This document shows positions 4,251 to 64,000 of a DNA stretch of 64,000 nucleotides, piece by piece. The translations under genes were made by a program, and so were the position numbers. Source of the DNA: Ascidiella aspersa (lineage: Eukaryota); assembly GCA_963924565.1 (NCBI GenBank), contig OZ004614.1, positions 18,414,001 to 18,478,000 of the forward strand, in the 5' to 3' direction. Under the pieces are notes generated by a model. That model worked only from the letters and a program-made list of their open reading frames with translations, had not been told where the DNA came from and made no database searches. Position 1 is the stretch's first letter, and each line of letters opens with the position of its first letter.

Positions 4251-4705
4251 TAAGTAAGCTTTTATTTACTTTACCTTGTCTATGACCTTTGACCATCCTA
4301 ACCTTCTTTTCCCTTTATTCAAAGTCTTTGGCTAGTTCTTTTTTGACAGACGACCTGTTTTAACATTTTTGGGTAATGGTTTAGCGCTTATAATTTGAGT
4401 TACCATTAACGCAGGGATATGGGCTTTACACCAATTAAATTGGATTATATAAATAGGCTCATTACGTAGGATGGCAGCTAAAGTTTATTTGCAATTTGCA
4501 TTGTCAGTAATTGATATCTGCCTTGTTCATAATCTTACACCACGCCTCTTTCGCTCTAAGTCGCCGCAGTTGTAAGTATTTACCATTGAGTTATGAGCTC
4601 GTTTTAATGTTGTCATATCGGTCGTACTGTGCAGATTTAAAACCGCATTTGACCAAAACTATATTTACGGCTCTTTTTCTTAAGTTGAAGGTGAAACTTT
4701 ACTTA

Positions 4706-34470: not shown

Positions 34471-35686
34471 GTAAAGCGATTATGTTTGTTTATTCGCGTC
34501 ATTAGGGGAAGCGAATAAAGGAGGAAAAGGACGAGAAAAACGGGCGAGGCGTACATTACACAACACGGAAATAATAAATAAATAAAAAGGAAAAGAAAGG
34601 TAATGTGTAATAACAATGGAAAGCGTTGGACAGGATGGGCGGCGGGGGTTAATATCTATAAATATTCGGAGGAAACGTTGCATTTTACGGGAAGGAAAGC
34701 GAGCAGAAAGTGGGCGGTAGAGAGCCCATGCGAATATTACATAAAGTTGAGGTACAATTGAAGAGGGTGCGAGAAAAGGAGTGGATATTTGAAAACCGTG
34801 CTAGGTCTCAACAGGGTATGCAGTGTGACGAGGTTACTAGGGAAAGGACAAAAAAAGGCGCGACATGGCAATATATTGACCACTAGGAGAGCTAGGAAGC
34901 GTTGTGGTGGAAGACCAATAAGTAGACAAAATTAACGAAGGCTTGCGTGGCGATGCTTACTATAAAACGAGGAGGAGTCATATTGAAACAAGCAAACAAG
35001 GTCTTAAATGGCGTAGGTAAATAAATAAACAAAGAAATAAATGGCGATGGATGCTGAAAAGAATAAAAAGAACAATAAGTAGAGAAAGGGTGTTGGTCAG
35101 CCAATGAGAGCTCAAAGTTTGTAGTGTCTAGGGTTCGGGGAGGGGGGTATGTCCCCTGGTTCTTCTCCCTGGATTGGCTATTAAGGAGAGCTTGTGCTAG
35201 TTCTCTCTCATTGGTGGCAGTATGGGTTTTCGCCTCGGACGAGAGCATTTTAGGGGTAATTCTGAATTTTATTGGGGCGCACAATGGAGCTTGGTCTTTT
35301 GATGATTGTTTTGCCTGTTATTTGGGCCTGTTCCGAAAAGAACTTGGACTATTTTTGGGTTGGATATTTAGATTTTATTTTGCCTATTATTTCACCTATC
35401 CCATTAGGACTGGGTGAAAGTGAGGAGGATTTTTGGTAAGGTGGTGCCGGAAAATTTAGTTGTTCTAGGTATTGGAGGGTTAATTTTTTGGGGGGCAGCT
35501 TTGCCTTGTTGGTTTTGGGTGGTCTAAGTGGGTTTTTTATTTGAAATTTACGGGGTTTTTGTTTCCTTATTGTGCGGTTTAAAGTTTTATTGGGTGGGAG
35601 ATTGGCGAGTTGAAATTGTCGTTTATGTTTTAATTTTATTGGGGGTGGGGTGGCAAAGCTGCCGCAGGACGCAACTCACAACGTAC

Positions 35687-38600
35687 CTATTGGGATAGCA
35701 AATTCCTGAGGTCTTGTATTGTTGACATGAATGTTGTGTCTAGCCTATTATGTTCAACGTTGAGTCGTTGTGTAATTCCTCTTTTTATTGCAGATATAAT
35801 TGCTGAAACTGGCCGAATTTGTTTATGTTCGAACTTGATTTTATTTCTGGTTCTCCAGATGTGGTGCCGGGTGAGTGTATTGATGTATACTAGGTGCTCT
35901 GTGTATATTTCAAGGTGGCTGGGTATGTTGAGTCGTGTAGTAATCTCATCAGTGAGCGTGGTGGCAGTGTTGGTGAGTCGGTTGATTAGCTGTTCAATGT
36001 ATTTCCACACTGGCGCCAGTGTGGAACATGTTGAAAAAATGTGGTGCGTGGTTTCTGGCCTACTTCCGCAGAAGAGGCACAAGGTAGCCGGGTCGAGAGA
36101 TATGGAAGAGAATTTGGTGGATACGGGTAAGAGGTCAAATAAAGTTCTATAATTAAACGTTTTTGCCGCGTTAGAGAGGATTGGGTGGTGGACGTTATTC
36201 CAGAGGGTTGTCGGAGCAATGGGACCATCCCTCTGGCTAACGTCGGGGTTGGGGGAGACTAGGCCTAGATAGAGGGTACGGATTGAGCCATGAACGAGTT
36301 GGTCGAAGGAGAAAGAATATTTTTTAACCAGGTTTAAGGCGTGTTTGTAGAAGGGGTTGGGGATAACGGCGTGGGGGTGTGAGTTTCTTAGTCGTAACTT
36401 AAAAAGGTTTGAAAGTTGGAGTCCAATATTATACTCGATCATGGCCAATCCGGGTGTAGTTGGGGTATCGTTTTCTCTATGGCGGCAATAGAAGAAGATA
36501 GACTGCATAAAGAAAAGATCGCAGTAGACGGGAATGTTTGCTACCTTGTATCCCCCCCTATCGAACGGAAGGGCCAGTTGTTGTATTGGAAGGTGCAATC
36601 TACTGTTCCCAGTTATAAAATTACCGACCGCGTCATCTACCCGTTGCCGCAACGACTCGGGGAGTGGATAAACCGTGGCTGTATAGGATATTAATGGCAG
36701 GAATTTAGCCTTCGTGACGATGGATTTGGCGTTCCACGTCATTGCGAACCGGGCATGGCGTTTTATTGTGTCTGTGAGGGTTTTAAAATGTTCGGCCCAG
36801 TTCGCCGTGACGCTCGGCCCAGACCCGATCACGGTCCCGAGTAAACTCAGGTGCGATCGAGTCCATCCGATGGGGGGGAGGGGGCCCTGAGCGCTTCGGG
36901 TGTAGAGGCCTTTGGTCTTGGAGTAGTTCAGAGTTAAACCCGAAGCGTCTCTGAAACGATCTAATTTTTGGAACGCCAATGTCACGGAGTATGGGTGGCA
37001 AAGGGTCAGGGTTGTGTCATCGGCATAACTGGGACACTTGATGCAGTGTCGACCAGGTATGCCGATGCCGCTGACCGACGAGTCGGCCTGAAGGGCCAGT
37101 GAGAAGGGCGTTGCGGCAATCAGGAAGAGGAACAAGCTAAGGGGATCGCCTTGTCTTATTCCCCTTCCAATTGCAAATGGCGCAGTCGGGAACCCGTTAA
37201 CAAGAACAGTAGATTGTGCGTCTGTGTTTATGCTGCGTATTACTCTGATAAAGTGTTCAGGAAAACCCATTTTAGTCATAACACAATAAAGCCATGCGTG
37301 GTCGACCGAGTCGAAGGCCTTCTTGAAGTCTAGGGAGATAAAGTAAGCATCCGTACCCCTCCCCAGCGCGTCATAGTAGAGATCCCTAAGGAGGGTGGTG
37401 GCATCCGATATACGCCGTTTTGGCGCTGCGAATTGGTGGGGGTGGAGGACTCGCTCCAGGATCGCTTTTATCCGAGTGGCCAGGATTTTGGTGTAAATTT
37501 TTAGGTCGGTGTTGAGCAGGGAGATAGGGCGATAGTTTCCTAGGTCCGAGGGATCTTGTTTTTTGTGTAAAAGGGTGAGTGTGCCGAGTTTCATGTCCTC
37601 GGGGATTTGGCCTTGTTCGTGGATTCGGTTCATGACGTCAGTCAGATCCCGACCAATCAGCTCCCAGTACAGAGAATAAAACTCTGTGCTGATGCCGTCC
37701 GGACCGGGGGACTTTCCCGACGCCATTTGCCGAATTGCGTTATGTACTTCCTGGCCCGTGATTGGTCGGGTCAGGGTGTCGTCTAAGGGGTCTAAGCTAG
37801 TAGGGACGTGCGCTAGAAAACTCCGCTGCGCCTCGGCGTCTGTGGGTTGAGTGCGGTACAAGTCCGTGTAAAAGCTGTGGGCGATGTTAAGCATCTCTAC
37901 GTTGTTACTGGTTTTGTTTTGGCTTGTGCCTTGTTTAAGCTCGAGTATGGTTGTGTTCCTACGCTGTTCGGCAAACCGAGCAAAGAAAGCCTTTGTGCCC
38001 CGGTCTCCCCAGTCAAAACCTTGGGCTTGGGATTTTAGAAGTCTGGCGCGGGCAGATTGCCGCTGAAGGGTGCAAAGTTGACGTTTAAGGGTTAGGTAGG
38101 GGGTAAGTAGGGTTGGGTTGTTTGCCAGCGGCCCCCAGAGTGCCGTGACGCCTTCCTGCAGTTGCACATGGTGTTTGTTTCGCTCTACGGCTAGCAATTT
38201 GGAGTGCTTTATGTTAAGGTCTTTTATGCGTTGTTTTATGTGCAGCCACCAGGAGGTTTTATCGTCGAAAAGGGCGGGGTGGAGCGTGCTCCACATTTCC
38301 CACCGCTTTTCGAGTTCCTCCAGGAAAGCTGCGTTGGCGTAGGTGCTAGTATTGTTTTTCCAGTACCCCTTACCCCTGCGGGATCCGGGGACTGTCTCGA
38401 TTTGTAAGGTTACCATGTCGTGGTCCGACTGGCAATTAGGCGGCGTCCCATTTTCCGAAATTGGTTTTATGAGTGCGCTGATATAGAAACGATCTAAGCG
38501 GGACTGTGTGTTGTTAAGTCTACGTGTATAGAATGGCCTATCGCCGTACAACTGCCGAAAGGAGTCTGACAACTGGAGATCGCGGCAAACGTCAATGAGA

Positions 38601-39071
38601 CCTGCCAGGAGCTCGGGATAAGTAGAGGGGGGGGTAAACGATCAAGGCGCGAGTTCTCCACCCCGTTAAAATCGCCCGCCAAAATGGTTGGGTGCCTCGA
38701 ATGCACGTGCACGTACAGCGACCCGAAGAAAGCTCTGCGAGCAGCACTTCCTTCGGTTCGCTGCGGGGCATACACGTTTACGACGTGTATTGTTGAGCCG
38801 AAAAGCTGTATATCGACTGCCAGGACCCGCCCGTCTCCGTCGCCACTACGCGCGCCGAAGCTGAGTGATGGATGCCTAAGCAATATCGCGACCCCGTTCC
38901 TCGCGAGAGGCCTCGACAAGGCCGACCAAAACAGGGCTTTATTGGGTTGCCATTCAACACCCCACGCCATTTCCTCCGCAGGAGAACTGTGCGTCTCCTG
39001 ATGGCCGATCGTTTGGCCGCATCTTTCATTCCCCCGACGTTGAATGTGGTTACTTTAAGGTAAGTAGCCAT
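35687..39071 (-). CDS. Family A ORF2: APE endonuclease, reverse transcriptase and C-terminal zinc knuckle (frameshifts in the endonuclease region)
   Basis: MATYLKVTTFNVGG, ILAGDFN, SRLDRFY, SDHD, GKSPGPDG, YRPISLLNTD, SLDFKKAFDSVDH, GIRQGDPLS, YADD, CLFC..ETTHHIFSTC. ORFs 38778-39071, 38494-38970 and 35687-38572. Confidence 0.95.
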
Positions 39072-39128
39072 GACTACTATTTAGTTTAGGTTAAGCTATC
39101 TATCCTAGGTACATCCTAAGTTGCGTCC

Positions 39129-40499
39129 TTATGCCATGCTTTGCGAAAGCGGCGTGGCCTTCTTCTCGCATTGGGGGCAGACGCTTATGTCTCCCGTGTT
39201 TGAAAAAAAATGGCAGCTGCCGACGCAGCTTTGTAGCCACTGGGGGCAGCCGGTACACTTAATGGCTTTGCCCGCTAGAGGGACTTGGACGGCCACGCCG
39301 CAATCGCAGGTTTCGGTTAGAGTTTCTAGGCGCTGTGCCTTATGGTTAGTTGTACTCTCGTCCGAGCCTGAATAAAACCGCTTAACTGCATCATTTATGT
39401 TGTCGTCGTCCTGATGCTGTTCCCCTCCTGTTGTGTCCGTTTCCGATGTGAATGTGGTTGTAGTTTCGCTTGAGCTGGATTCCGTGGTGCCCGATGTGCC
39501 CGCGTTCACCGCTAAGGCGTCGTTTTCAGTGGTGCCCGCGTTCACCGCTAAGGCGCTGTTTTCTGTTTTGCCCGCGTTCACCGCTAGGGCGCTGTTGCTT
39601 GCTGTGCCCGCGTTCACTGCTAAGGCGTTGTTGTCATTGGACCCCTGTTCACCAGGTGCCGCTTTTTCTTTCCCGCCTTCCTCGCTCTCGCTCGGTGGTT
39701 GGTCGGTTGGCGGGGGGGAGGTTCTCTCAGGCACCTGTTGATGGGAAGGCGGCGGAGGAGGAGGAAGAGGGGGAGTAGGAGGAGGAGGAGGGATGTTGGG
39801 GAGAGGAAGGCCTGGCTTGGGCCATTGTTTCCCGTTGCGTCTGTTGACGGTGGTGTAGCCATCCATGTTGGATGGCCCTGGTTTGGGGGTTGACGTGTGA
39901 TCCGGCGTTGTCAGCTCCTGAGATTTCAGGACCTGGCAGTCGTCCTTGTAGTGGCCGAACTTTCGGCATATAAAGCATTGGGGGGGTTGGCCCGTGTACT
40001 TTGTCGGGAAGGCCAGCCCCTCGACCCGGATCGTTTGCGGGATGGGGCTTCTTTTGAGGTCCGCAGTTCTCATTGTATAAGTGGTGCGGCCGTCGTTTAA
40101 ATGGTTGCGGTCCTTCTGCCGCTTGTAAACTTTGACTTCTCCATGCCGGAAATTCAGTAGGGAGACTATTTCCTGGATCGGAAATCTTGGCGGGACGTGT
40201 GAGACTTCGACCGTAGTAAACTCGCTTTCATACCGCTTGACGGACTGGACCGCTGATTGGCCGGTTAGGCGTATGACCAGGTCATCGGCGGTTTTTTCGT
40301 CGACGCAGGTGAAGTCAGTGAAGCCTCCTCTGCGTTCGACGATGCCTTCCAGGCGGTTGTAGTTGAAGTGCGCCTTCTTCAGCAGTTCGTATATGAAGTT
40401 GCGGGATCTTTTGTCCGGCAGCTTTGCCACTACTTCTGTTTTTCTTTCGAAGATTGTTCGGCTTCTGGCGACAACTTTGTTCCAGGCTGGCTGGGACAT
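39129..40499 (-). CDS. Family A ORF1 (RRM-like region, CCHC knuckle, low-complexity linker, Cys-rich C-terminus)
   Basis: Intact 456 aa ORF upstream of ORF2; CFICRKFGHYKDDC; C-terminal CDC..CTGC..CVGSC..CPQC. Confidence 0.9.
   Translation of the reverse strand: MSQPAWNKVVARSRTIFERKTEVVAKLPDKRSRNFIYELLKKAHFNYNRLEGIVERRGGFTDFTCVDEKTADDLVIRLTGQSAVQSVKRYESEFTTVEVSHVPPRFPIQEIVSLLNFRHGEVKVYKRQKDRNHLNDGRTTYTMRTADLKRSPIPQTIRVEGLAFPTKYTGQPPQCFICRKFGHYKDDCQVLKSQELTTPDHTSTPKPGPSNMDGYTTVNRRNGKQWPKPGLPLPNIPPPPPTPPLPPPPPPSHQQVPERTSPPPTDQPPSESEEGGKEKAAPGEQGSNDNNALAVNAGTASNSALAVNAGKTENSALAVNAGTTENDALAVNAGTSGTTESSSSETTTTFTSETDTTGGEQHQDDDNINDAVKRFYSGSDESTTNHKAQRLETLTETCDCGVAVQVPLAGKAIKCTGCPQWLQSCVGSCHFFSNTGDISVCPQCEKKATPLSQSMA
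39497..39632. repeat. 36-bp coding tandem repeat x4 (ALAVNAG)
   Basis: TGCCCGCGTTCAC(C/T)GCTA(A/G)GGCG with period 36. Confidence 0.95.
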
Positions 40500-40964
40500 T
40501 GCGGGCTGGGTTGAGAAGGTGTGCAGTGGGGTGACTGCAGGTTAAAGGGGAGGATATTTGGTGGCGTCTTATTGGACGGTTGTCCTCAACGCTTAGGTCG
40601 GGTAGTTCTAGCGGACCTTAAAAAAGGCCAGGAAAAGGGTTTTTTCCTTTTGCGCTTGGTAGGATCTGAGGTTGGGGTTTTTTGGGTTGGCCCACTTACC
40701 GTTCCGGCGGCAAAACTCTTGAAAAACCGAGTAATGCGTTTTTTTCCGGCAACGGGGTGGGACGGGTTGCTGGTACTAAGCCTGTTCAGGGAAATCCCTA
40801 CGCTCCAAACCTTCGGGGCTAGGCTGGAGCTTATTCTCTTTTCTTCCTGAATCAGGTAAGTCTGGCAGGATATTGCGCAGATCTTGCTGTTGTGGACGGT
40901 TTGTCGGGTCCTTTCGGAGCTCTGATCTGAAAGACTGACTGCTGACAGCTCTTCGGATATTGTG

Positions 40965-41160
40965 AAGGATAGAGTTCTTCACTTTGTAATAACTACGCCT
41001 CGCCTATCGAAAAACCGCCCGACGGTTGAAAAGCGCGCGCAGTAACACCCAATCGTTTTTTTTCGCGCACTCTCGCACTGCTCCATTGGCGAAAGCGTCG
41101 AACCGTCATTTGCATCTCTTCCGATCTATAAGCGACGAGAGTGGAAAAACACGCCACACT
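40965..41160. promoter_or_regulatory. Orphan H2A/H2B-type divergent histone promoter
   Basis: CCAAT 41049-41053, E2F-type TTTCGCGC 41061-41068, ATTGG 41085-41089, octamer ATTTGCAT 41108-41115 and TATAAG 41127-41132. Octamer followed by TATA is the classic H2B arrangement. It lies between head-to-head elements A1 and B1. Confidence 0.75.
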
Positions 41161-42582
41161 CTTCGTCGTCGAAAGCTACGAAGAACCGATTTCACTCGAG
41201 AAACAAGATACTCGAACATACAAGTGTATGACCCAAATATGTTGTCCAAGCCATGGAGCATGGTTGTTTCCCAGGGGAATCCCCACACCGCCGCAGGGAA
41301 TCCTTCCCTCGTCGCAGCGCCCCACAGGAGGGAGGTCTTCTCCCGTCGTACGGAGGTCGTTGCTAAAATTCCTAGCAAGAGGTCAAGGAACTTCATCTAC
41401 AGCCTCCTAAAACTGGTGTCTTTCGACACCAACAATCTGGAGGGGATAGTCGAACGAAAAGGAGGCTACACCGACTTTACGTGTAAAACTGAACAGCAAG
41501 CCGAAGAGTTGGTCTTCAAGCTGAAGAGCAGACCCGAGGTCGATCTCGCAAGGCGCTATGAGAGCGAATATACCAGCGTGGAAATCTCGCACGTGCCACC
41601 TCGCTTCAACATCGGTACGCTTATGGCGTACATCCAGAAGAACCACGGCACTGCCCTAGAGGCCAGAAAGCTAAAGGACGCCATAGCCGGTCTCCCAGAC
41701 GGGAGAATAAAAGCAGAGGTGCTCACCGAGCACCTGAAACAAAATCCCATCCCGGCAACCATCCGATGCGAAGGACTCACGTTTCCAGTGAGATACTACC
41801 AGCAACCACAGCAGTGCTTTCACTGCAGAGCCTTCGGCCACATCCGGGCAAATTGCCCGACACGCCAGCCCCCATCGCAGCGCACAGCAGACGAGGAACC
41901 CGACCCAGCGACAAACTCAGAGAAGACCCCGGAGAACATGCCAACAGACATCTCGTCGGAGAACGGTGAGAAGACGGAGAAAGAAAGAAGGACAGAGGCG
42001 GCAACATCATCCAGCATAACGGCGGCCACAGCAGTAACAGCAACAGCAGCATCCGGCAACTCAGCGGCAAACGATATCCAACAGCCAGAAGACGACTGAA
42101 CCACCAAACGACAAAGAAGCAGCGGCAACACCCCTCCCGAGAACGACCAAAAGCGTCCAAAAGCAGAAGATGACAGGCTATGCCTGCCGCAGTCCGAGGG
42201 GCCTTCTGTGGACGGGCCAGTGCGTAAATGCCGTGAATGCCTCGAGTGCGACTGCCAAGCTCTCGTGGATTTTCCAGAGCCGGGCATACCGACTGTATGC
42301 GACGCCTGCAAGAGGATCTTCCGCTGGTGCGATGAATGCAATTATGCATACGTGTGGCTTCCCAAAAGCCAGAAGTCTTGCCCCACTTGCGGGACTTTCA
42401 TACCGGAAAGCCTCTCACAAACCCTCCCGGGTTGACAGAGGCGGTCTGGAGCAGGAAATTACATAATCATTGTTTGATTTCAAAGTTTTTATTTGCATAT
42501 TTGTTTTTCGCCTCGCCCGTTTTATTTTCGTTCTTTTTTCTTATTCGTTTTCTTTAATTGATGCGAATAAACCAACATACTC
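41161..42582 (+). mobile_element. Family B ORF1-only non-autonomous Tx1 derivative (copy B1)
   Basis: ORF1 is homologous to family A ORF1 and is followed within ~150 bp by a 3' end (CGCCTCGCCCGTTTT...TTATTCG...GCGAATAAA) homologous to that of family A. No ORF2. Confidence 0.85.
41239..42435 (+). pseudogene. Family B ORF1 with one nonsense codon (42097-42099)
   Basis: MLSKPW...CFHCRAFGHIRANC. The TGA corresponds to TGC in copy B3, and the frame continues into Cys-rich ORF 42208-42435. Confidence 0.85.
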
Positions 42583-42872
42583 AGAAACAAGACACTCGAA
42601 CATACAAGACCCAAATATGATGTCCAAGCCATGGAACATGGCCGTTTCCCAGGGGAATCCCCACACCGCCGCAGGGAATCCTTCCCTCGTCGCAGCGCCC
42701 CGCAGGAGGGAGGAGGTCTTCTCCCGTCGTACGGAGGTCGTTGCTAAACTTCCTAGCAAGAGATCAAGGAACTACATCTACAGCCTCCTAAAACTGGTGT
42801 CTTTCGACACCAACAACCTGGAGGGGATAGTCGAAAGAAAAGGAGGCTACACGGACTTTGCTGAAGAGAGCT
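42583..42872 (+). mobile_element. Tandem second family B copy (B2), 5' part only
   Basis: Near-identical to 41199-41480; deletion junction into family C ORF2. Confidence 0.9.
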
Positions 42873-42875
42873 GAA

Positions 42876-45800
42876 GCTCCGGGTGTAGGTTGTTTCAATT
42901 CTTGTCCCTACGGAGGGTCTTCCTCCGGGGGGGTCGCCATTTTATTTCCTGCGTCCCCACTTTTACCCCTTTAGACATTTTCTCAGATCTCACCGGCAAA
43001 ATTATTTCCTACAATATTAATACTAATATATATATGCCCCGTCCGGTAAAACCAACCACTTAGCCAACAACAAATTTTTCGACAACCTTTACCCTTACGC
43101 AACCTCCCCCCACCCCACCATCCTGGCTGGAGACTTTAATTGCGTTCTCCAGCCCCACCTTGATAAATACCCCCCAGAACCATCCCGTCACCCCCAACAA
43201 ACCCTTAATTACCCTATTAGATACCCTTAACCCTTACGCCAAAACTTTCTCCCGCCGCACCCATAACTCCCAATCCCGCCTTGACCGTTTTTATGTTACC
43301 CCAATATTACCCCCGTTAATCACACCTTCACCCCAACCCCCTTTTCAGACCACGACCTAGTCACCCTCACCCTTGACATCCCCATTTCTCCCCCAGAGGC
43401 TACGGCCTCTGGAAAAACGACATCCGCACCCCCTTACCCACCCCGACTTCCAAATACCACTTTACATTAAATTAAACCGGCTTAAATCAATACAACAGGA
43501 CTATGACCCGCTTAATTTTTGGATTCTAGTCAAAACCCAAATCCCAGAAACAACATTCGACCCTTGCCAAATTACGGGAACAAATGAGTCCCCTTAAAAC
43601 CTTTGCTACTTTCCAAAAATTAAAACGTGAACTCAACCCCAATACTACCTGGAAAAATCAAAACAAGACCTTCTAAAGGCAAAGGTTGATAATATGGAAA
43701 ATAAAAATATATCTAATAAAGCCCTTTATACTCTCGTGTGTTGCCCCAAAAACAAAAAACCCATATCAACGAACTACTGGATGATTTCCATCTCTCCCAT
43801 ACCACCCCCGCCGAACTCTGCCACCTAGCGGAGAAATATTATAAAAACCTATACGACTGCCCCCCAACCCCCCAGACCCAAATTGACCCCTTCCTCCACA
43901 ACCATACCCCAATCCCCGACCAACTCCACCAATCACTCACCCAACCATTTACCCGCCATTAAATTAGCAACATTATTAAAACCTTCCCCACCGGTAAAAC
44001 CCCCGGGCCCGATGGCCTCAGCATTGAGTTTTTTACACTGAATGCTGGGAGAGCTCATCGGGCCCTATCCCACCCCCGCCCTCAATTACGCCTACCTAGC
44101 CCCAACCCTCCCCGCAGACTTTACCCACGGAGCCATAACCCTCATACCGAAAACCCCCGCTGCCAACTATCGCCCCATTTCTCTTCTAAACACAGATCTC
44201 AAAATTCTAAATCAACGCATTAAGCCGCAATTAAAACATTTTCTCTCTCCCCTTCAACACGCACAACCCGGAAAAAATACTTCAACCGCATCAACCCTCA
44301 TCCGCGACCTCTACCACCATGCCACCCAAAACACCCCCCCTCATATTTCATATCCCTTGATTTCAAAAAAGCCTTCGATTCGATCACCCACCCATATCTC
44401 ACCCACATCCTCACCACCCGCAACTTCCCCCAACCCTTCATAAATTACACCCAAACCAGCCAAACCTCAGCCACCTCCGCCATTTTAATAAATGGCTTCC
44501 CCACTAACCCCGTGGCGATCAGAAGAGGTGTGAGGCAAGGCGACCCGCTGAGTCTCACCCTCTTCCTGATCGCCCTTGACCCCCTCCTCAAAAACATCCA
44601 GGACAACCCCTCCATTTCTCCCTCCCCCGCCCCTACCCGCACCCCACCCAAACTCGTCGCTTACGCGGATGATGTTACCCTCACCCTTGCCCACCCCCAC
44701 TCCCTCCCCCCGCTATTCGACAACCGTACCGGCTTGACCCTCAACCCCCTCAAAACGAAGGAATCCCTCCCCCCTCCTCTCCACGACCTCCCCCAAATCG
44801 ACTGGAACCCTCTATCAATATCCCCCCTAAATATACCCATCGGAGACCCCACCCAAATTACTCAAGCTTGGCAATCTTCCATACACAAACTTTAAAAACA
44901 AGATCTCACAAATTACACATCCGTTTCCTAACCTTTGACTCCAAATCCATTCTCTCTAAGACCATCTCCTTCTCCCCAATTTTACTCAACTGGCATCCGT
45001 TTACCCAGCCCGAAACCTTATAAAAAATAAAATTAATTCCAAATTATAACAGTATTTCATCGGCCGCAACCCCCCCATTCCCCTCGACACCCTGGCGGCC
45101 AGTCGCCCCCACGGGGGCTACTCGGTCGCCAACATCCCCCTCTACCTCGACCTCTTCCTTACCCGCATAATAGGCCCCTACCTCAACCACCGCACCCTTG
45201 ATTCATTCCCCCGCTGATACCCAAAATCAAATTTTGGAATACAACCTTCTATCAAAGAAATACGATCTTAGAATAAAAAATAATCTGCCACACACCATGT
45301 TTCCCTCACCATATTATCAACAAATTTGGACTTTAATAACTCAATATAATCCGACATTGACCAAACTCACGTGCCCCAAAATAAAACCCCTCTACCTCCG
45401 CCTCACCATCCCCCAGCAATACTCTAACCCCAACCCCAGCTACACCCCACCCCAAAGCCTAATACTTTTCTTTAACAACTCTATTCGATCCCGGTGCCAA
45501 ATTGAACAGGCCAGACCCTCTTCTCCCCATATTGACCTGTTTGTAACCCTCCTTTAATGACCAACTGACCCCTCCTCTCCCACCAAACTAAATTGTCCAA
45601 ACCCAATGTCAACCCAAAACCTTAGGTATCCGTTCCTACCCCCTTAAATTTTTAAATCTCTTGACTTGTTATTATTGTTTATGCCTGCCTTGTTCTTTTT
45701 TATTTCTCTCGCTTTTAACACTCAGTTATCTTTCGAAATGGGAAACGTATCCCTGAACCATTTGCGCCCCGTAGGACGCCATTTTTGTTTTTTCACCGCC

Positions 45801-46161
45801 ATTTTGTTTTTCATCCGCCATTTTGTTTTTTTTTAATTTTTCAATTCATTTACATAGAGCCTGCTTTGGGCTTCTATTCCACCCCCACCTAAATGTTAGG
45901 CTTTAACAAACCCCGATACGCACATCCTGGGAAAGGGGAGCATCATAGCTTTCCTCTCAAAACGAAAGACCTGCCGCATGCATACTCCTCCTTGTAGGGG
46001 GAGTGAAGGGCAGGTCCCGTCTAACTTCCATACTGGTGTATATTTCACCACCTTCACTCGCCTTTTCTTTTCCGTTATACAATAAATTCAAATAAAGCAA
46101 ACTACACGGGGCAATGATGAGCCCAAACAAACCAAAGGGGGGGTTAGCACATTGCATTGCT
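42876..46161 (+). mobile_element. Family C Tx1 element: degenerate ORF2 and 3' UTR
   Basis: ILAGDFN, SRLDRFY, GKTPGPDG, YRPISLLNTD, GVRQGDPLS and YADD across several frames; conserved 3' modules at 45920-46155. Confidence 0.92.
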
Positions 46162-46174
46162 AAGGCTGTCAATG

Positions 46175-51499: not shown

Positions 51500-51512
51500 A
51501 AGGCTGTCAATG

Positions 51513-55507
<3,995 letters not shown>

Positions 55508-55617
55508 TAGCGAGTTTTTGGGTCGTCGCTCGAAGGTTTGTTATTTGCCAAGTAAAATCCTGCTCACTAACGAACTAGGGGGGTACATTTCAAGGTAGAG
55601 GTAGGTACCAAATGGTT

Positions 55618-55652
55618 CTCTTTCAAACTGTAGGGTGGCTCTGAAAAGAGCC
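55618..55652 (-). terminator. Histone mRNA 3' stem-loop and downstream purine-rich element (HDE)
   Basis: Minus strand AAAC-GGCTCTTTTCAGAGCC-ACCC (stem-loop 55637-55652), followed by AAAGAG. Confidence 0.97.
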
Positions 55653-55679
55653 GTTTTTTGGTGTGAAGCAGTTGTTGCT

Positions 55680-56057
55680 TTAAACTTTCTTTGAGGTCTT
55701 CTTGGGAAGAAGCACGGCCTGGATATTGGGCAGCACACCTCCCTGAGCGATGGTTACACCGCCGAGCAGCTTGTTGAGCTCCTTGTCGTTGCGAATGGCC
55801 AACTGCAAGTGACGGGGGATGATTCTGGTCTTCTTGTTGTCACGGGCTGCGTTGCCAGCCAACTCGAGCACTTCGGCGCTCAGGTACTCGAGCACGGCTG
55901 CCAGGTACACGGGGGCACCGGCACCAACACGCTCCGAGTAGTTGCCGTTGCGCATCAGTCTGTGCACACGACCGACTGGGAACTGCAGGCCAGCTCTCGA
56001 GGAACGGCTCTTCGGCTTTGGCTTTGCTTTACCACCACCTTTACCACGTCCAGACAT
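55680..56057 (-). CDS. H2A: Histone H2A, replication-dependent (intact ORF, promoter displaced, possibly pseudogenising)
   Basis: 125 aa, MSGRGKG...[12 protein letters not shown]...[20 protein letters not shown]; intronless; stem-loop downstream. Confidence 0.97.
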
Positions 56058-56062
56058 TTTTT

Positions 56063-59000
56063 GCGATTATGTTTGTTTATTCGCGTCATTAGGGGAGGCG
56101 AATAAAGGAGGAAAAGGACGAAAAACGGGCGAGGCGTACATTACACAACACGAGAATAAAAAAAAAGAAAAAGAAAGGTAATGGATAATAACAATGGAAG
56201 CGTTGGACAAAATGGGCGGCGGGGGTTAATATGTATGTATATTCGGAGAAAACGTTGCATTTTACGGAAAGGAAGGCGAGCAGAAAGTGGGCGGTAGAGA
56301 GCCCAAGCGAATGTTCCATAAAGTTGAGGTACAATTAAAGAGGGCGCGAGAAAAGGAATGGATATTTGAAAACAGTGCTAGGTCTCAACAAGGTATGCAG
56401 TGTGACGAGGTTACGGGGGAAAGGACAAGAAAAAGCTGCCGAAGGACGCAACTCACAACGTACCTATTAGGATAGCAAATTCCTGAGGTCTTGTATTGTT
56501 GACATGAATGTTGTGTCTAGCCTATTATGTTCAACGTTGAGTCGTTGTGTAATTCCTCTTTTTATTGCAGATATAATTGCTGGAACTGGCCGAATTTGTT
56601 TATGTTCGAACTTGATTTTATTTCTGGTTCTCCAGATGTGGTGCCGGGTGAGTGTATTGATGATGTATACTAGGTGCTCTGTGTATATTTCAATGGTGGC
56701 TGGGTATGTTGAGTCGTGTAGTAATCTCATCGGTAAGCGTGGTGGCAGTGTTGGTGAGTCGGTTGATTAGCTGTTCAATGTATTTCCACACTGGCGCCAG
56801 TGTGGAACATGTTGAAAAAATGTGGTGCGTGGTTTCTGGCCTACTTCCGCAGAAGAGGCACAAGGTAGCCGGGTCGAGAGATATGGAAGAGAATTTGGTG
56901 GATACGGGTAAGAGGTCAAATAAAGTTTATAAATTAAAATCTATAATTAAAGTTTTTGTCGCGTTAGAGAGGATTGGGTGGTGGGCGATATTCCAGAGGG
57001 TTGTCGGAGCAATGGGACCATCCCTCTGGCTAACGTCGGGGTTGGGGGAGACTAGGCCTAGATAGAGGGTACGGATTGAGCCATGAACGAGTTGGTCGAA
57101 GGAGAAAGAATATTTGTTAACCAAGTTTAAGGCGTGTTTGTAGAAGGGGCTGGGGGTAACGGCGTGGGGGGTGTGAGTTTCTTAGTCGTAACTTAAAAAG
57201 GTTTGAAAGTTGGAGTCCAATATTATACTCGATCATGGCCAATCCGGGTGTAGTTGGGGTATCGTTTTCTCTATGGCGGCAATAGAAGAAGATAGACTGC
57301 ATAAAGAAAAGATCGCAGTAGACGGGAATGTTTGCTACCTTGTATCCCCCCCTGTCGAACGGAAGGGCCAGTTGTTGTATTGGAAGGTGCAATCTACTGT
57401 TCCCAGTTATGAAGTTACCGACCGCGTCATCTACCCGTTGCCGCAACGACTCGGGGAGTGGATAAACCGTGGCTGTATAGGATATTAATGGCATGTTCGG
57501 CCCAGTTCGCCGTGACGCTCGGCCCAGACCCGATCACGGTCCCGAGTAAACTCAGGTGCGATCGAGTCCATCCGATGGGGGGGAGGGGGCCCTGAGCGCT
57601 TCGGGTGTAGAGGCCTTTGGTCTTGGAGTAATTCAGAGTTAAACCCGAAGCGTCTCTAAAACGATCGAATTTTTGGAACGCCAATGTCACGGAGTATGGG
57701 TGGCAAAGGGTCAGGGTTGTGTCATCGGCATAACTGGGACACTTGATGCAGTGTCGACCAGGTATGCCGATGCCGCTGACCGACGAGTCGGCCTGAAGGG
57801 CCAGTGAGAAAGGCGTTGCGGCAATCAGGAAGAGGAACAAGCTAAGGATCACCTTGTCTTATTCCCCTTCCAATTGCAAATGGCGCAGTCGGGAACCCGT
57901 TAACGAGAACAGTAGATTGTGCGTCTGTGTTTATGCTGCGTATTAATCTGATAAAGTGTTCAGGAAAACCCATTTTAGTCATAACACAATAAAGCCATGC
58001 GTGGTCAACCGAGTCGAAGGCCTTCTTGAAGTCTAGGGAGATAAAGGAAGCATCCGTACCCCTCCCCAGCGCGTCATAGTAGAGATCCCTAAGGAGGGTG
58101 GTGGCATCCGATATACGCCGTTTTGGCGCTGCGAATTGGTGGGGATGGAGGAATCGCTCTAGGATCGCTTTTATCCTTTGGTGTAAATTTTTAGGTCGGT
58201 GTTGAGCAGGGAGATAGGGCGATAGTTTCCTAGGTCCGAGGGATCTTGTTTTTTGTGTAAAAGGGTGAGTGTGCCGAGTTTCATGTCCTCGGGGATTTGG
58301 CCTTGTTCGTGGATTCGGTTCATGACGTCAGTCAGATCCCGACCAATCAGCTCCCAGTACAGAGAATAAAAAACTCTGTGCTGATGCCGTCCGGGCCGGG
58401 GGACTTTCCCGACGCCATTTGCCGAATTGCGTTATGTACTTCCTGGCCCGTGATTGGTCGGGTCAGGGTGTCTGTCGTCTAAGGGGTCTAAGCTAGTAGG
58501 GACGTGCGCTAGAAAACTCCGCTGCGCCCCGGCGTTTGTGGGTTGAGTGCGGTACAAGTCCGTGTAAAAGCTGTGGGCGATGTTAAGCATCTCTACGTTG
58601 TTACTGGTTTTGTTTTGGCTTGTGCCTTGTTTAAGCTCGAGTATGGTTGTGTTCTTACGCTGTTCGGCAAACCGAGCAAAGAATGCCTTTGTGCCCCGGT
58701 CTCCCCAGTCAAAACCTTGGGCTTGGGATTTTAGAAGTTTGGCGCGGGCAGATTGCCGCTGAAGGGTGCAAAGTTGACGTTTAAGGGTTATGTAGGGGGT
58801 AAGTAGGGGGTTGGGTTGTTTGCCAGCGACCCCCAGAGTGCCGTGACGCCTTCCTGCAGTTGTACTTGGCGTTTGTTTCGCTCTACGGCTAGCAATTTGG
58901 AGTGCTTTATGTTAAGGTCTTTTATGCGTTGTTTTATATGCAGCCACCAGGAGGTTTTATCATCGAAAAGGGCGGGGTGGAGCGTGCTCCACATTTCCCA

Positions 59001-59247
59001 CCGCTTTTCGAGTTCCTCCCGGAAAGCTGCGTTGGCGTAGGTGCTAGTATTGTTTTTCCAGTACCCCTTACCCCTGCGGGATCCGGGGACTGTCTCGATT
59101 TGTAAGGTTACCATATCGTGGTCCGACTGGCAATTGGGCGTCGCATTTTCCGAAATTGGTTTTATGAGTGCCGTGATATAGAAACGATCTAAGCGGGACT
59201 GTGTGTTGTTAAGTCTACGTGTATAGAATGGCCTATCGCCGTACAAC
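56063..59247 (-). mobile_element. Family A copy A2 (3' two-thirds, frameshifted), 3' end abutting the H2A start codon
   Basis: Near-identical to 34476-34850 plus 35656-38553; ends GCGAATAAACAAACATAATCGC-AAAAA-ATGTCTGGACGT. Confidence 0.95.
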
Positions 59248-60387
59248 TCGACACCAACAACCTGGAGGGGATAGTCGAAAGAAAAGGAGGCTACACGGAC
59301 TTTACGTGCAAAACTGAACAGCAAGCTGAAGAGCAGACCCGAAGTCGATCTCGCAAGGCGCTATGAGAGCGAATACACCAGCGTGGAAATCTTGCACGTG
59401 CCACCTCGCTTCAACATCGGTACGCTTATGGCGTACATCCAGAAGAACCACGGCACTGCTCTAGAGGCCAGAAAGCTAAAGGACGCCATAGCCGGTCTCC
59501 CAGACGGGAGAATAAAAGCAGAGGTGCTCACCGAGCACCTGAAACGAAATCCCATCCCGGCAACCATCCGATGCGAAGGACTCACATTTCCAGTGAGGTA
59601 CTTACAACCACAGCAGTGCTTCCACTGCAGAGCCTTCGGCCACATCCGGGCAAATTGCCCGACACGCCAGCCCCCATCGCAGCGCACATCAGACGAGGAA
59701 CCCGACCCAACGGCAAACCTCGTAAACATGGCAGCGGACACCTCGTCAAAAGGCAAAGAGGAGACGCAACAAGTGAAAAAACCAGAAGTGGCAACATCGC
59801 CAAACGCAACAGCAACAACAATCTCCGGCAACTCAGCGGCAACCGACATCCAACAGCCAGAAGACGACTGCACCACCAAACGACAAAGAAGCAGCGGCAA
59901 CACCCCTCCCGAGAACGACCAAAAGCGACCAAAGGCCGGAGATGACAGGCTATACCTGCCACCGTACGAAAAGCCTTCTATCCACAACGAAGGGTGCGAT
60001 TACCTCATCTGCACCTGCACCGGTATGGTGGAATATCCAGAGGTGGTCGCACCGACCGTATGCGGTGAATGTTTGAAGCTCTACCGCATGTGCAATGGAT
60101 GCAATGAAAAGCACACGAGTGGTACCTCGAGAGCCAGAAGCTTTTCCCCAAGTGCAAGACCCCCATAATAGGCTTCCTCTCGCAAACCCTTCCGGGTTAA
60201 CAGGGGTGTGGCCTAGAGTGGGAATCCCGCAGAAAGTCAAATGCGCTATTTTTTGCCTAATTTGCATAATTTCGTTAATTTCAATTATTTTTTTATATTC
60301 ACATTTGTTTTCGTTTCGCCCGTTTTATTTCGTTCTTTTTCTCCCTTATTCGTTTTCTTTAATTGATGCGAATAAACCAACATACTC
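59248..60387 (+). mobile_element. Family B copy B3 (ORF1-only, 5' deleted)
   Basis: ORF 59383-60168 is homologous to B1; same 3' end GCGAATAAACCAACATACTC; no ORF2. Confidence 0.9.
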
Positions 60388-60417
60388 ATGGCTGCAAGCA
60401 AAGGAAAGGCTGTTAAG
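60388..60417 (+). pseudogene. Probable N-terminal codons of histone H2B (MAASKGKAVK), interrupted
   Basis: The ATG directly follows the B 3' end on the octamer side of the divergent unit. SKG-KAVK resembles the H2B tail motif KGSKKAV. Only 10 codons, so this is an inference. Confidence 0.5.
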
Positions 60418-63400
60418 TAATAGCTTTGTTGTACGTGAAGGAGTAGAAGCCGCAAGGCTCAGCAACTGGCTGACCTTGTTTCTAGTGTTGTTACAGCAAA
60501 CCTGTCTTACTGCTGCCATTTAGCTTTGAGGCATCGCTGAATACAAAGAGTAGCAGTTGCTTGGATTTATTTTCATCGCTCAGCACAACGGCTTGGATTT
60601 CATCGTTTCCGTTATATGGAAACATATCGCTTCATAAGGTAACAATTGTTTGTATATTTTTCATTCGCTGGGACCCCCCGTTCGAAGCTGGATAACAAGA
60701 ACCTGTAAAGACTTCGATATGAAGCGCTTAAACGTGGACCGAACAGGCAAGGTAACCATCCAGTTTGCCCCGCCCCAATCGAGACCACAGATTTACGAGC
60801 TCATGGAGCATCTCGGCTTTAACTACAAGCGCCACCTTGAAAGCTTCATACAAAAGCCGAACGGGAAAAACTATTTTGTGCTGCCACGACCAGCAGCAAG
60901 CTGTCGAATTAGCTGCCAAGCTAAATACATCGAACGTAGTTAAACGGGCCGTCCCCTACGAGGACTCAATTATCAAGGCAAGGTTTGTTACATACCAAAT
61001 CGTATTAGACCTGATACTGTCAGGGACTTTTTCTCTGCCTGCTGCCCCGTGCAGACTCGCCATTGACGCACCTGATTCAAGGCGCATTAATGCCGGGAAA
61101 CTCATCTTAGACTTAGACCGCCAGTCTGTAGAGCTAAAGGCAATACCCAAGGAAATAAAAATGGGCCATACCATTATCGGGGTCCATTACGATGGCCAAC
61201 CTGAATCATGCAGGTACTGCAAACAATCTGGCCACGTCTTAGAGACATGCCCCAAATTATTAAAGAAAAACCGCGATAACGAAGAACGAAAATTGTTAGA
61301 AACCAAAAGAGCAGAAGAGGAACGACAACTTGCGCAAAATAGGCAACAAATTGTCCTTGGGGAACCTCGGTCACATTCTTCCCGCAGAGACCAGCACCCC
61401 GGGAGGAAGACGAGTACCCAGGAGCGGAAGTCAACGCGCATCAACCCGCCTCCACTGGAGAGCTCTGCTGAAACAACAACTACTTCCAGCTCTGATGATC
61501 TGAGCACTGGCTCATCAACAGAGGAGGAGGAGCAACAGGAGGAACAGGAGAAGGAGGAGCAGCGGAAGGAGAAGGAGCAAGATAAGGAGGAGCAGGAGCA
61601 GCAGGATGAACACCACCATAACACACCGGACCCGGACTCGGAACGGGGCAAAGGTACTCAACCTGTTGGCGGCACCAAGAGACCCTTAGAGATCTCGCCG
61701 TCCGACACTAGTGGCACATCCAGAAAAATCCCCTACACCGACTTGGTGTGTCAGGCCTGCCATGGCAGCAGTACCAATTGGCCGCAACCTTTTATGCTCA
61801 GAATGTGGGGACGATTCCTTCGCACCCCTCAACTATAGTTGCCCCCCAGTTTTGATAACCCCCTCTTTTAAAAAAAAATGTCAAAATTTTAAAACCCCTT
61901 ATCAATAAACAAAATGGCGTCACATTTAAAAATCGCAACTTTTATTGTAAACGGTTTAACCAATGTAACTAAACGTAATGCTGTCTTCAACTATTTAAAA
62001 ACTTTAAGCGTCAACATTTTAGTTTTGCAGGAGACCCACTCGACACCCCAGGTTGAGTCAACCTGGGCTGCCGAGTGGGCTCCGGGTGTAGGTTGTTGTT
62101 TCAATTCTTGTCCCTCCGGAGGGTCTTCCTCCGGGGGTGTCGCCATTTTATTTCCTGCGTCCCCACTTACCCCTTTAGACATTTTCTCAGATCTCACCGG
62201 CAAAATTATATCCTGTAATATTAATACTCTAACCCATACCATACATTTAACCAATATATATGCCCCGTCCGGTAAAATCAATTACTTAGCCAACAACAAA
62301 TTTTTCGACAACCTTTACCCTTACGTAATCGCTCACCTCCATAAAGAAATAGCTAAAAAACTTAACGTAGAAAAATCCCGGAAAATAGCCCAGAAACATT
62401 CGGACCTTGCCAAATTACGGGAACAAATGAGTCCCCTTAACTACCCCCAAACCTTACTTTCCAAAAATTAAAACGTGAACTCAACCAATACTACCTGGAA
62501 AAATCGAAACAAGACCTTCTAAAGGCAAAGGTTGATAATATGGAAAATAAAAATATATCTAATAAAGCCCTTTACACCCGAGTATTGCCACAAAGGAAAA
62601 AACCCATATTAAAGAATTACTGGACGAATTTCACCTCCCACATACCACCCCCTCAGAACTCTGCCACCTAGCGGAAACTTTTACCAAAACTTGTACGACT
62701 CCCCCCCGATCCCCCAGACCCAATACGACCCCTTCATCCACAATCACACCCCAATTCCCGACCAACTTCACCACTCACTCACCCAACCATTCACCCAACA
62801 CGAAATTAGAAACATCATTAAGACCTTCCCCACCGGTAAAACCCCCGGGCCCGACGGTCTCAGCATCGAGTTTTACACGGAATGCTGGGACCTCATCGTG
62901 CCCTATCTCACCCTTGCCCTCAATCATGCTTACCTTGCCCCAATCCTCCCCGCCGATTTCACCCACGGAGCCATAAACCCTTATCCCCAAAACCCCCGCT
63001 GCCAACACCCTTGCCAACTATTGCCCCATTTCTCTTCTAAACACAGATCTCAAAATCCTAAACAAAATTTTACCGTATTAAACCGCATTTAAAACACTTT
63101 CTATCACCCTTACAACACGCACAACCCGGGAAAAATACATCAACTGCATCAACCCTCATCCGTGACCTCTACCACCATGCCACCCAGAACATCCCCCCTT
63201 CCTATTTTATATCCCTTGATTTTAAAAAAGCCTTCGATTCAATCACCCACCCCTGGCTCACCCACATCCTCACCACCCGCAACTTCCCCCCACCCTTCAT
63301 AAATTACATCCAAACCACCCAAACTTCAGCTACCTCCAAAATTTTAATAAATGGCTTCCCCACTAACCCGTGGCGATCAGAAGAGGTGTGAGGCAAGGCG

Positions 63401-64000
63401 ACCCGCTGAGTCTCACCCTTTTCCTGATCGCCCTCGACCCCTTCCTCTAAAACAGCCAGGACAACCCCTCCATTTCTCCCTCTCCCGCCCCTACCCGCAC
63501 CCCACCCAAACTCGTCGCATACGCGGACGATGTTAGCCCCCACTCCCTCCCCCCGCTATTCGACACCTTGGCCAAATTTACAACCGTATCCGGCTTGACC
63601 CTCAACCCCCTCAAAACGAAGGCTACCTATACCAAATCCCTCCCCATCCCCTCCATGATATACCTCAAATCGATTGGAACCCCCTATCCATATCCCCCTT
63701 AAATATACCCATAGGAGACCCCACAAACTTTAAAAACAAGATCTCACAAATTACACATCCGTTTCTAACCTTTGACTCCAAATCCATTCTCTCTAAGACC
63801 ATCCTTCTCCCCAATTTTACTCAACTGGCATCCGTTAACCCAGCCCCAAACCTTAAAAAAAAAAAAATAAAAAATCCCATTCCCCTCGACACCCTGGCGG
63901 CCAGTCGCCCCCATCCCCCTCTACCTCGACCTCTTCCTTACCCGCATAATAGGCCCCTACCTCAACCAACGCACCCTTGATTCCCCCGCTGATACCCAAA
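60418..64000 (+). mobile_element. Family C/D-type Tx1 element (5' UTR, frameshifted ORF1, degenerate ORF2), running off the window
   Basis: ORF1 ~60650-61838 (KDFDMKRLNV.., CRYCKQSGHVLETC); ORF2 from 61914 (MASHLKIATFIVNG, LQETH, GKTPGPDG, YADD). Preceded by AAGGCTGTTAA. Confidence 0.92.

Follow-up and report, generated by a model that had tools for sequence, protein, structure and literature searches.

L1/Tx1-type retrotransposons inserted in sense at recurrent positions in the 5' ends of the replication-dependent histone genes of Ascidiella aspersa

The genome of Ascidiella aspersa (308-Mb assembly) was found to carry, at the margin of its replication-dependent histone genes, a pile of long interspersed nuclear elements (LINEs) inserted in sense at about eight positions around the histone start codons. 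The window analysed is a 64,000-bp stretch, positions 18414001–18478000 of contig OZ004614.1, hereafter C8; window positions are preceded by w. An earlier reading made from the letters alone, here called the sequence-only reading, had described some 30 kb of related elements encoding an apurinic/apyrimidinic endonuclease (APE) and a reverse transcriptase (RT), with histone-gene parts as neighbours, and inspection of w34476–64000 at base level upheld this: the segment consists of such LINEs placed head-to-tail, and its only non-element DNA is histone 5' sequence. It is probable, on the whole, that one LINE clade of L1/Tx1 type colonised the histone array, with the transcribed 5' end of the genes as its niche and with a site preference that is lineage-specific and leaky. 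For the stronger proposal, that the whole clade depends on replication-dependent histone promoters and that its lineages are specialised by nucleotide across the five histone genes, with occasional switching, the chances appear about even.

All canonical H2A copies of the assembly lie on C8 between 18.248 and 18.481 Mb. The intact histone unit measures 4713 bp (H1+, H4+, H3+, H2A-, H2B+), and eight units are assembled, so that the target is multicopy. Along the array, four compact units are followed by units broken by insertions of about 6 kb and then by DNA with histone scraps only. The window is the decayed margin of this single replication-dependent histone array of the genome, and the scraps between its elements comprise a piece of H2A/H2B promoter, an H2A gene, an H3 remnant and H2B and H4 pieces of 11–47 nt. 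An Rfam search over the window returned no RNA gene besides the histone 3' stem-loop, and so no other RNA-gene target. All homology breaks over 303 kb around the window were mapped against the intact unit, while copies outside the cluster were studied by means of the match coordinates of junction-spanning queries and of hypothesis-driven patterns.

Relative to the start codons, the insertions fall at H1 -15, H1 -22, H2A -9, H2B -10, H2B +40/50, H3 +10, H4 +14 and H4 -96. All are in sense and lie within -96 to +50 of the start codons of the five histone genes, and the homology-break map showed no break in the spacers or gene bodies of the units. Three-prime junctions were recovered at H1 -15 (three copies), H1 -22, H4 -96, H2B +40 (elements D and F) and H3 +10 (elements E and M), and, for the lineages without poly(A), at H2A -9 (family A) and H2B -10 (family B). 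Single nucleotides have been hit repeatedly, with target-site duplications (TSDs) of 11–13 bp at those sites, and across the copies the marks of target-primed reverse transcription (TPRT) are displayed: poly(A) of 11–60 nt, duplications of 4–13 bp and 5'-truncated copies.

The individual junctions named by the sequence-only reading were recovered at base level. Family A, on the reverse strand, stops at w56067; next come 9 nt of H2A 5' untranslated region (5'UTR) and then the ATG. The tail and 11-nt poly(A) of E (w55227–55249) run into AAGCAAACCGC, which is H3 codons 4–7. At w40998–41187 the copies A1 and B1 diverge from an H2A/H2B promoter, A1 leaving leftward and B1 rightward, and at w60387 a B-type 3' end adjoins DNA starting with ATGGCTGCAAGC, the beginning of H2B with a 7-nt deletion (the reported ATG followed by SKGKAVK). 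The boundary motif AAGGCTGTYAA is H2B +40 to +50 (codons 9–12) and stands exactly at element edges at w46162, w51500 and w60406. The orientation shared with the host gene was likewise borne out, every catalogued histone junction being in sense.

Independent insertions share both target nucleotide and orientation. The H2B +40/50 site has been used by C', D, F, the F-like element that follows it and the 5' end of E; the H3 +10 site by E, M and the element following the duplicated target of M; and H1 by two lineages 7 nt apart. At H2B +40 and H3 +10 the elements form head-to-tail arrays, in which the duplicated target segment is the sole separator. The cleanest case is D, which is full length, has identical 11 bp on both sides and lies between two other elements abutting the same 11-mer. 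In a genome-wide pattern check, tail plus poly(A) plus H2B target was found in the cluster only, and so was tail plus poly(A) plus H3 target. The 12 nt that follow family A, AAACAAACATAA, were considered as a plain TSD; this was rejected, as B ends nearly alike before a different target, and AAACAAACATAA therefore is, or became, part of the 3' end of the element.

Much of the pile duplicates DNA beside the intact histone array 110–150 kb upstream. The segment holding A1, the promoter and B1 (w34476–42582) is a 95–98% copy of C8:18301140–18309285, where family A is intact (open reading frames, ORFs, of 456 aa for ORF1 and 1140 aa for ORF2) and lies between the H2A promoter and a complete H2A gene. 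Likewise, w59248–64000 is a 95–98% duplicate of C8:18316024–18320805 and, together with the DNA beyond, of C8:18316024–18343700, and a composite B+C' unit is present as a tandem triplicate. Owing to segmental duplication, many junctions are thus not independent, several being copies of one event. The three young H1-site copies share flank variants absent from the intact units and so represent one event spread by unit duplication, and A2 with its adjoining B fragment looks like the A-promoter-B arrangement with the middle deleted. That the junctions trace to a single amplified insertion, the outcome named beforehand as fatal to the proposal, is true of family A and of the young H1 family and does not extend to the whole system. 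After collapsing, the distinct junctions are those of A (H2A -9), B (H2B -10), the young H1 family (H1 -15), K (H1 -22), a lineage very different from the young H1 family, H4a (H4 -96), F, the following F-like element, C', D and the 5' end of E (H2B +40/50), and E, M and its follower (H3 +10), to which an inferred source copy at H4 +14 is added; a rough count gives about 12–15 separate insertion events.

An account without any integration preference would have dispersed LINEs accumulating in neutral broken units, with duplication multiplying chance insertions. It can appeal to the large 95–98% duplications between C8:18.30–18.34 Mb and 18.45–18.50 Mb, to the triplicated B+C' composite and to the dispersed copies that all lineages possess. 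Nevertheless, the 12–15 events of the rough count persist after collapsing, and histone 5' regions make up about 1e-5 of the genome, so that chance cannot give this junction pattern. Moreover, all insertions are in sense and none lies in spacers or gene bodies of intact units, the precise TSDs of D sit inside a pre-existing junction, and histone leaders on off-cluster copies, described below, show that source copies were resident in histone genes. The junction catalogue has already largely refuted this account, which is considered very improbable.

The array itself was also observed in Logan contigs. Over L019:1–6000 (C8:18275001–18281000), the word depth of the H2B–H1 spacer relative to that of the H1-site element was about 13x in run X1 and about 200x in run X2, the same ratio in the assembly being 8 units to 3 elements; run X2 also contains a variant diverged by about 2%. 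These values hint at a histone array collapsed in the assembly and at an element load that varies between samples, although depth reflects copy number poorly.

Histone leaders are present on full-length copies at other genomic places; their end is the in-array junction, and they start 29–33 nt past the initial T of a TATA-like box (H2A, H2B, H4 and H1). These start and end positions are strong, though indirect, support for transcription of the source copies from histone promoters. An A copy on C4 has 34 nt of H2A leader and lacks the promoter, a B copy on C3 has about 30 nt of H2B leader, and H1-like copies on C5 have 36 nt of H1 leader. H2B leaders occur at no fewer than seven loci (at least), every one starting at -38 to -43 and several standing directly upstream of element copies, and H4 leaders ending at +12 occur at two loci besides D. 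No H3 leader was found off-cluster, so that leaders come from four of the five genes. At their 3' end, the A and B copies outside the cluster extend 4–12 nt into downstream H2A or H2B, as expected if read-through transcripts are the templates in these lineages without poly(A). The leaders also disclose moves of lineages between histone genes: D carries an H4 leader (-32 to +14) yet resides in H2B, B carries an H2A leader with the A-type leader/body joint yet resides in H2B as well, and some ORF1-only copies akin to the 5' part of E have a leader from H2B or H4.

Leaders could also arise if the RT switched template onto abundant histone mRNAs, as in the known U6-L1 chimeras, instead of copying histone-promoter transcripts of resident elements. 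They do begin at the mRNA 5' end, as expected of chimeras, the ends of the H2B leaders are variable, and no RNA read crossing a joint was found in one run. In A, B and H1-like copies, however, leader and element meet at the very nucleotide of the in-array joint and the alignment is continuous across it, which favours transcription of a resident source over template switching, and intact copies do reside behind histone promoters. Template switching is accordingly regarded as an improbable origin of the leaders.

Two further loci outside the cluster combine histone and element sequences. At C8:18721936–18722509 an H2B leader (-38 to +1) adjoins an H4 leader (-41 to +12), and about 200 bp away a family A 3' end continues through the H2A 5'UTR to the ATG. 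An old A-like copy of opposite orientation lies at C8:18644390–18647154, 170 kb past the downstream end of the window. It adjoins 90 nt of H2A promoter that are 97% identical and contain the TATA box, and the locus probably represents a further histone unit, now decayed, with a hit at the same site.

A number of observations weigh against a clade that lives at histone 5' ends. Dispersed copies exist for every lineage, including A, B and the ORF1-only elements akin to the 5' part of E, and on this point the site specificity of the sequence-only reading is not supported in the form in which it was put; its idea that the families partition the histone cluster by site stands for the defined sense sites in H1, H2A, H2B, H3 and H4, and lacks support in so far as the lineages are not confined to one. 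Of about 16 exact tails in the H2B +40 lineage, at least 11 lie outside the cluster, where their flanks are unrelated. Five of the six young H4a-family copies are off-cluster (95–98% identity), and the one in the cluster lies upstream of the H4 TATA box, hence not downstream of a histone start site. Several junction sets (A, the young H1 family, and the F, K, M and G pairs) each go back to one event that was later duplicated, and no target motif shared beyond AAAG was found. The single RNA run, in which expression is very low, gave 24 reads, all on one strand, which fits sense if the library is stranded as usual, and none of the 24 covers the promoter-element joint. Lastly, 23 metagenome contigs contain A-like elements (44% aa identity) in same-strand arrays, and no histone ORF, N-terminal histone codons or histone stem-loop was recognised on them.

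The leakiness can be followed further in the off-cluster copies. None of the at least 11 off-cluster tails of the H2B +40 lineage has an H2B-like flank, not even AAAAGG, and three of the six family A 3' ends are off-cluster; the pattern expected of a strict safe-haven LINE such as R2 or Keno, with the target beside nearly all intact 3' ends, is not seen here. An ORF2 of at least 1140 aa was seen in the cluster only (48 of 798 candidates scored), and on this sample the off-target copies look dead on arrival.

The main rival to a lineage-specific leaky preference is regional tethering. Some state shared by histone 5' ends, for which the histone locus body, S-phase transcription, open promoter-proximal DNA or a tether of ORF1p or ORF2p are candidates, would attract the elements, and a short A-rich motif would set the exact nick. 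This would suit the five unrelated target sequences, which are nonetheless always within -96 to +50 of a histone ATG, the moves between histone genes (D, B and the ORF1-only relatives of the 5' part of E), the presence of AAAG as the sole common motif and the lack of even partial likeness to the H2B target in the off-target flanks. The H2B leader ends vary as well (-2, +1, +11 to +15, +33 to +39), which implies more than two H2B sites. Regional attraction is harder to reconcile with separate events that reuse the same nucleotide with TSDs of constant length at H2B +40 and H3 +10, and with the many AAAG motifs in the Lys-rich H1 tail and in the spacers that have received no insertion; besides, no candidate tethering domain was found in the proteins, Pfam giving only the CCHC knuckle in ORF1 and leaving a Cys motif unclassified. 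Regional tethering is thus held to be rather unlikely, and a leaky preference particular to each lineage is favoured.

With such a leaky, lineage-specific preference, source copies would have no promoter of their own and would be transcribed from the histone promoter. Transcripts of the poly(A) lineages would have a conserved 3' RNA module in common and be primed at a T-rich nick in the bottom strand (CTTT/), while those of the A and B lineages, without poly(A), would be copied from read-through transcripts. Integration at the lineage-preferred sites would most likely be directed by recognition through ORF2p or its endonuclease, and in A and B the choice of site may be aided by homology between the 3' RNA and the target. 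The preference being leaky, off-target copies would lack a promoter and decay; in the array, multicopy histone genes would tolerate the hits, and dead units would rot and duplicate, eventually giving a window such as this one.

Pfam analysis of ORF2 disclosed Exo_endo_phos (2.5e-21), RVT_1 (9e-34) and zf-RVT (3.4e-06). ORF2 is collinear with human L1 ORF2p, the only solved relative (E 7.5e-59, residues 4–734), and no match to the R1Bm or TRAS endonuclease was found. On the domain order of ORF2 and the TPRT marks, the elements are classified as APE-type retrotransposons without long terminal repeats (LTRs), of the L1 group (L1/Tx1). ORF1 has a region resembling an RNA-recognition motif and a CCHC knuckle, which is weak in Pfam (E 0.002–0.007), visible in all ORF1s and not specific to Tx1. 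The closest database proteins are unnamed; one relative of 27–29% identity bears the automatic label 'Transposon TX1', the single hint of membership in the Tx1 clade. At the ORF1 C-termini (A, w39132–39290; also B, H1b, H4a and F) a short Cys motif, CxxC...CxC, follows a long low-complexity linker; it is expanded to eight Cys in A and B, has no Pfam match and is a candidate nucleic-acid or target-binding module. Within this linker in family A, a 36-bp sequence is repeated four times in tandem (w39496–39640), encoding a 12-residue unit (approximately NSALAVNAGTTE).

In the RT tree, A (H2A), K (H1 -22) and H4a branch off deeply, the young H1 family has E (H3) as its sister, and C, D and F (H2B +40) group tightly together with M and the off-histone copy N. 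In the type of their 3' tail, E and M, which both occupy H3, are like the H1 family, while D, F, G and N have another type. Tree and tails fit a loose rule of one lineage, one preferred site. M was rejected as a simple element, for it combines the RT of the H2B +40 lineage with a tail of H1/H3 type and is thus a chimera or two elements. The poly(A) lineages possess a conserved 3' module of about 80 nt (for instance w51400–51479 and w55157–55236), also present in the ORF1-only C', in which GGGCAATGATGAGCCC is followed by a lineage-specific palindrome, CTGAGCCCTC and poly(A). It is probably a recognition signal for the RT. RNAalifold on the 3' tails gave a weak consensus of -5 kcal/mol, and the module is therefore described as conserved and not as a proven structure.

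From its left end, the pile begins with 4 nt of H2A 5'UTR (-9 to -6; w34476–34479, reverse strand) downstream of A1, the remainder having been removed by an LTR-type retroelement that ends at about w34475–34481. The remnant of the latter (w31861–34481, reverse strand) is of the LTR-retrotransposon pol type (RVT_1 and RT_RNaseH), truncates the H2A 5'UTR and has its terminal 82 nt or so at no fewer than ten (at least) genomic places with 95–96% identity. A1 (w34480–40997, reverse strand) is a near full-length family A LINE and a duplicate of the intact copy at C8:18301156–18307649; its ORF1 is intact (w39132–40499), its ORF2 is split by a frameshift in the endonuclease part, and about 55 nt of its 5' end have been deleted together with the H2A TATA box and leader. 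The divergent H2A/H2B promoter piece (w40998–41187) is 96% identical to positions 4116–4304 of the intact unit and stops 11 nt before the H2B ATG. Inserted at H2B -10 is B1 (w41188–42582, forward strand), a 1.4-kb non-autonomous element with ORF1 only, whose first 45 nt or so are H2A leader with the A-type leader/body joint and whose 3' end is A-like and lacks poly(A). Element C (w42583–46161, forward strand) is a decayed chimera, in which a 5'-truncated B-like start is fused to an ORF2 of the H2B +40 lineage and the 3' tail is truncated.

The central part, up to the H3 remnant, is on the forward strand throughout. The upstream TSD copy flanking D, AAGGCTGTCAA (H2B +40 to +50), occupies w46162–46172 and is followed by the H4 leader of D (-32 to +14; w46173–46219), which is 91% identical to the intact H4 gene and begins 33 nt past the first T of the H4 TATA box. 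D itself (w46220–51499) is full length but decayed, with an ORF1 and an APE-RT ORF2 with many frame breaks; its conserved 3' module terminates in CTGAGCCCTC (w51470–51479), after which comes poly(A). The downstream TSD copy, again AAGGCTGTCAA (w51500–51510), is at the same time the 5' boundary of E. The latter (w51511–55249, with the tail at w55227–55236 and 11 nt of poly(A)) is a chimera: its 5' part, to about w52500, is a 5'-truncated A/B-like ORF1-only element, and the remainder is the 3'-terminal two-thirds of an ORF2 whose sister is the H1-site family. The H3 remnant that follows (w55250–55463) extends from codon 4 to a truncation at about codon 93; its frame has been shifted by the internal loss of 52 nt (about codons 8–25) between short GCCGC-like repeats.

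On the reverse strand lie the histone 3' stem-loop of H2A (w55611–55657; Rfam RF00032, 39.1 bits) and H2A with 9 nt of 5'UTR (w55680–56066), whose ORF (w55680–56057, 125 aa) is intact and 98% identical to the array copies, with A2 intervening between the gene and its promoter. A2 (w56067–59248, reverse strand) is a family A copy whose truncation lies at about ORF2 residue 159; its frame is broken many times, its 3'UTR is a short variant of 370 nt, and its H2A -9 junction is as in A1. It is followed, on the forward strand, by a B-like ORF1-only element (w59249–60387), 5'-truncated so as to begin at about ORF1 residue 77, and by the H2B remnant from the ATG to +50 (w60388–60417), which reads M A A S K G K A V K, has the 7-nt deletion and connects the B-like 3' end with the 5' end of F. 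F (w60418–64000, forward strand) is a LINE of the H2B +40 lineage and a duplicate of C8:18316539–18322171; it continues past the window to C8:18479378, where poly(A) and then AGGCTGTCAAGAAA follow.

Arrays of LINEs were noted in other places. Under JGI24021J15306, JGI24158J21664, JGI24159J19872, JGI24022J15233 and Ga0210059 (L036–L055), eukaryotic LINE arrays are filed as metagenomes, with up to 4–5 elements of 63–78% mutual identity on one strand within 24 kb. Many copies of a distant LINE (about 25% aa identity to A) with open frames of about 1200 aa occur at C3:5.22–5.44 Mb and C7:14.5–15.3 Mb; in the C3 block they are often 8–17 kb apart and mostly on one strand. This LINE may be another array-resident or target-specific family.

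In the full-text literature searched, a search that did not extend to Repbase and Dfam, no report of a LINE targeting histone genes was found. To our knowledge, no target-specific LINE has a protein-coding gene as its target; microsatellites and another transposon are among the known targets. The targets named for target-specific elements are rRNA genes, small-RNA genes and telomeric repeats (PMC4640811, PMC4494074), and the Tx1 clade is one of the three groups that hold most target-specific families (PMC4640811). A paper on Characidium gives CENSOR hits to LTR elements in histone clones and nothing further. What is new here is a set of target-specific LINEs that combine a protein-coding target, transcribed by RNA polymerase II (Pol II), with probable promoter capture.

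If the proposal is true, this would be the first safe haven formed by a protein-coding, Pol II-transcribed and S-phase-regulated gene family, and would tie the expression of the elements to DNA replication. With a clade living in histone 5' ends, the safe-haven strategy would come to include protein-coding genes transcribed by Pol II, and expression of the clade would be expected to track that of the histones, in S phase and early embryos. The leader fossils are unusually direct genomic evidence of source copies driven by a host promoter. The series of related ORF2 proteins differing in site and stringency would be useful for the evolution of LINE target choice and for targeted integration, and the system bears on how histone arrays evolve, through the knock-out of units, their purging and the pile-up of dead units at the edge.

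Among known systems, R1, R2 and the other elements specific for ribosomal DNA (rDNA) likewise occupy a tandem multicopy gene in sense and at fixed nucleotides, and in the R1-clade radiation over 28S and 18S sites several related lineages also share out the sites of one locus. R2, which lacks its own promoter, is transcribed together with its target, and target sequence read through at the RNA 3' end aids precise priming (in part PMC4494074). The present elements differ from R1 and R2 in that the target is a Pol II protein-coding gene family, hit in the 5'UTR or first codons, that ORF2 is L1-like, that specificity is much leakier, and that the leader is retained into new copies and no ribozyme was seen. 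Tx1-clade LINEs (Tx1L, Keno in U2 small nuclear RNA genes, Mutsu in 5S rDNA, Dewa, Kibi and Koshi) are similar in being APE-type with multicopy targets and in having two ORFs with a CCHC knuckle in ORF1, whereas a protein-coding target and many off-target copies set the histone elements apart; the likeness is not a clade assignment.

SLACS, CZAR, CRE and NeSL are inserted in spliced-leader RNA genes, a few nucleotides past the start site of a tandem gene transcribed by Pol II; they are early-branching, with a restriction-like endonuclease and a small non-coding RNA as target. They share with the present case a multicopy target and a host promoter able to drive the element, which here is APE-bearing and L1-like and resides in protein-coding histone genes. 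TRE5 and TRE3 of Dictyostelium integrate position-specifically by tRNA genes, a target of RNA polymerase III, outside the transcribed region and tethered by TFIIIB/C, and are the model for the regional alternative discussed above, being position- rather than sequence-specific for one gene class. L1 is known for 5' transduction and promoter capture. The same has been described for the MAST2 subfamily of SVA (PMC4494074). In both, as here, a piece of upstream host exon starting at the host transcription start has been copied, a sign that a host promoter served the source copy; there it is a one-off accident of a single source, whereas in A. aspersa it is recurrent, involving four of the five histone genes and several lineages.

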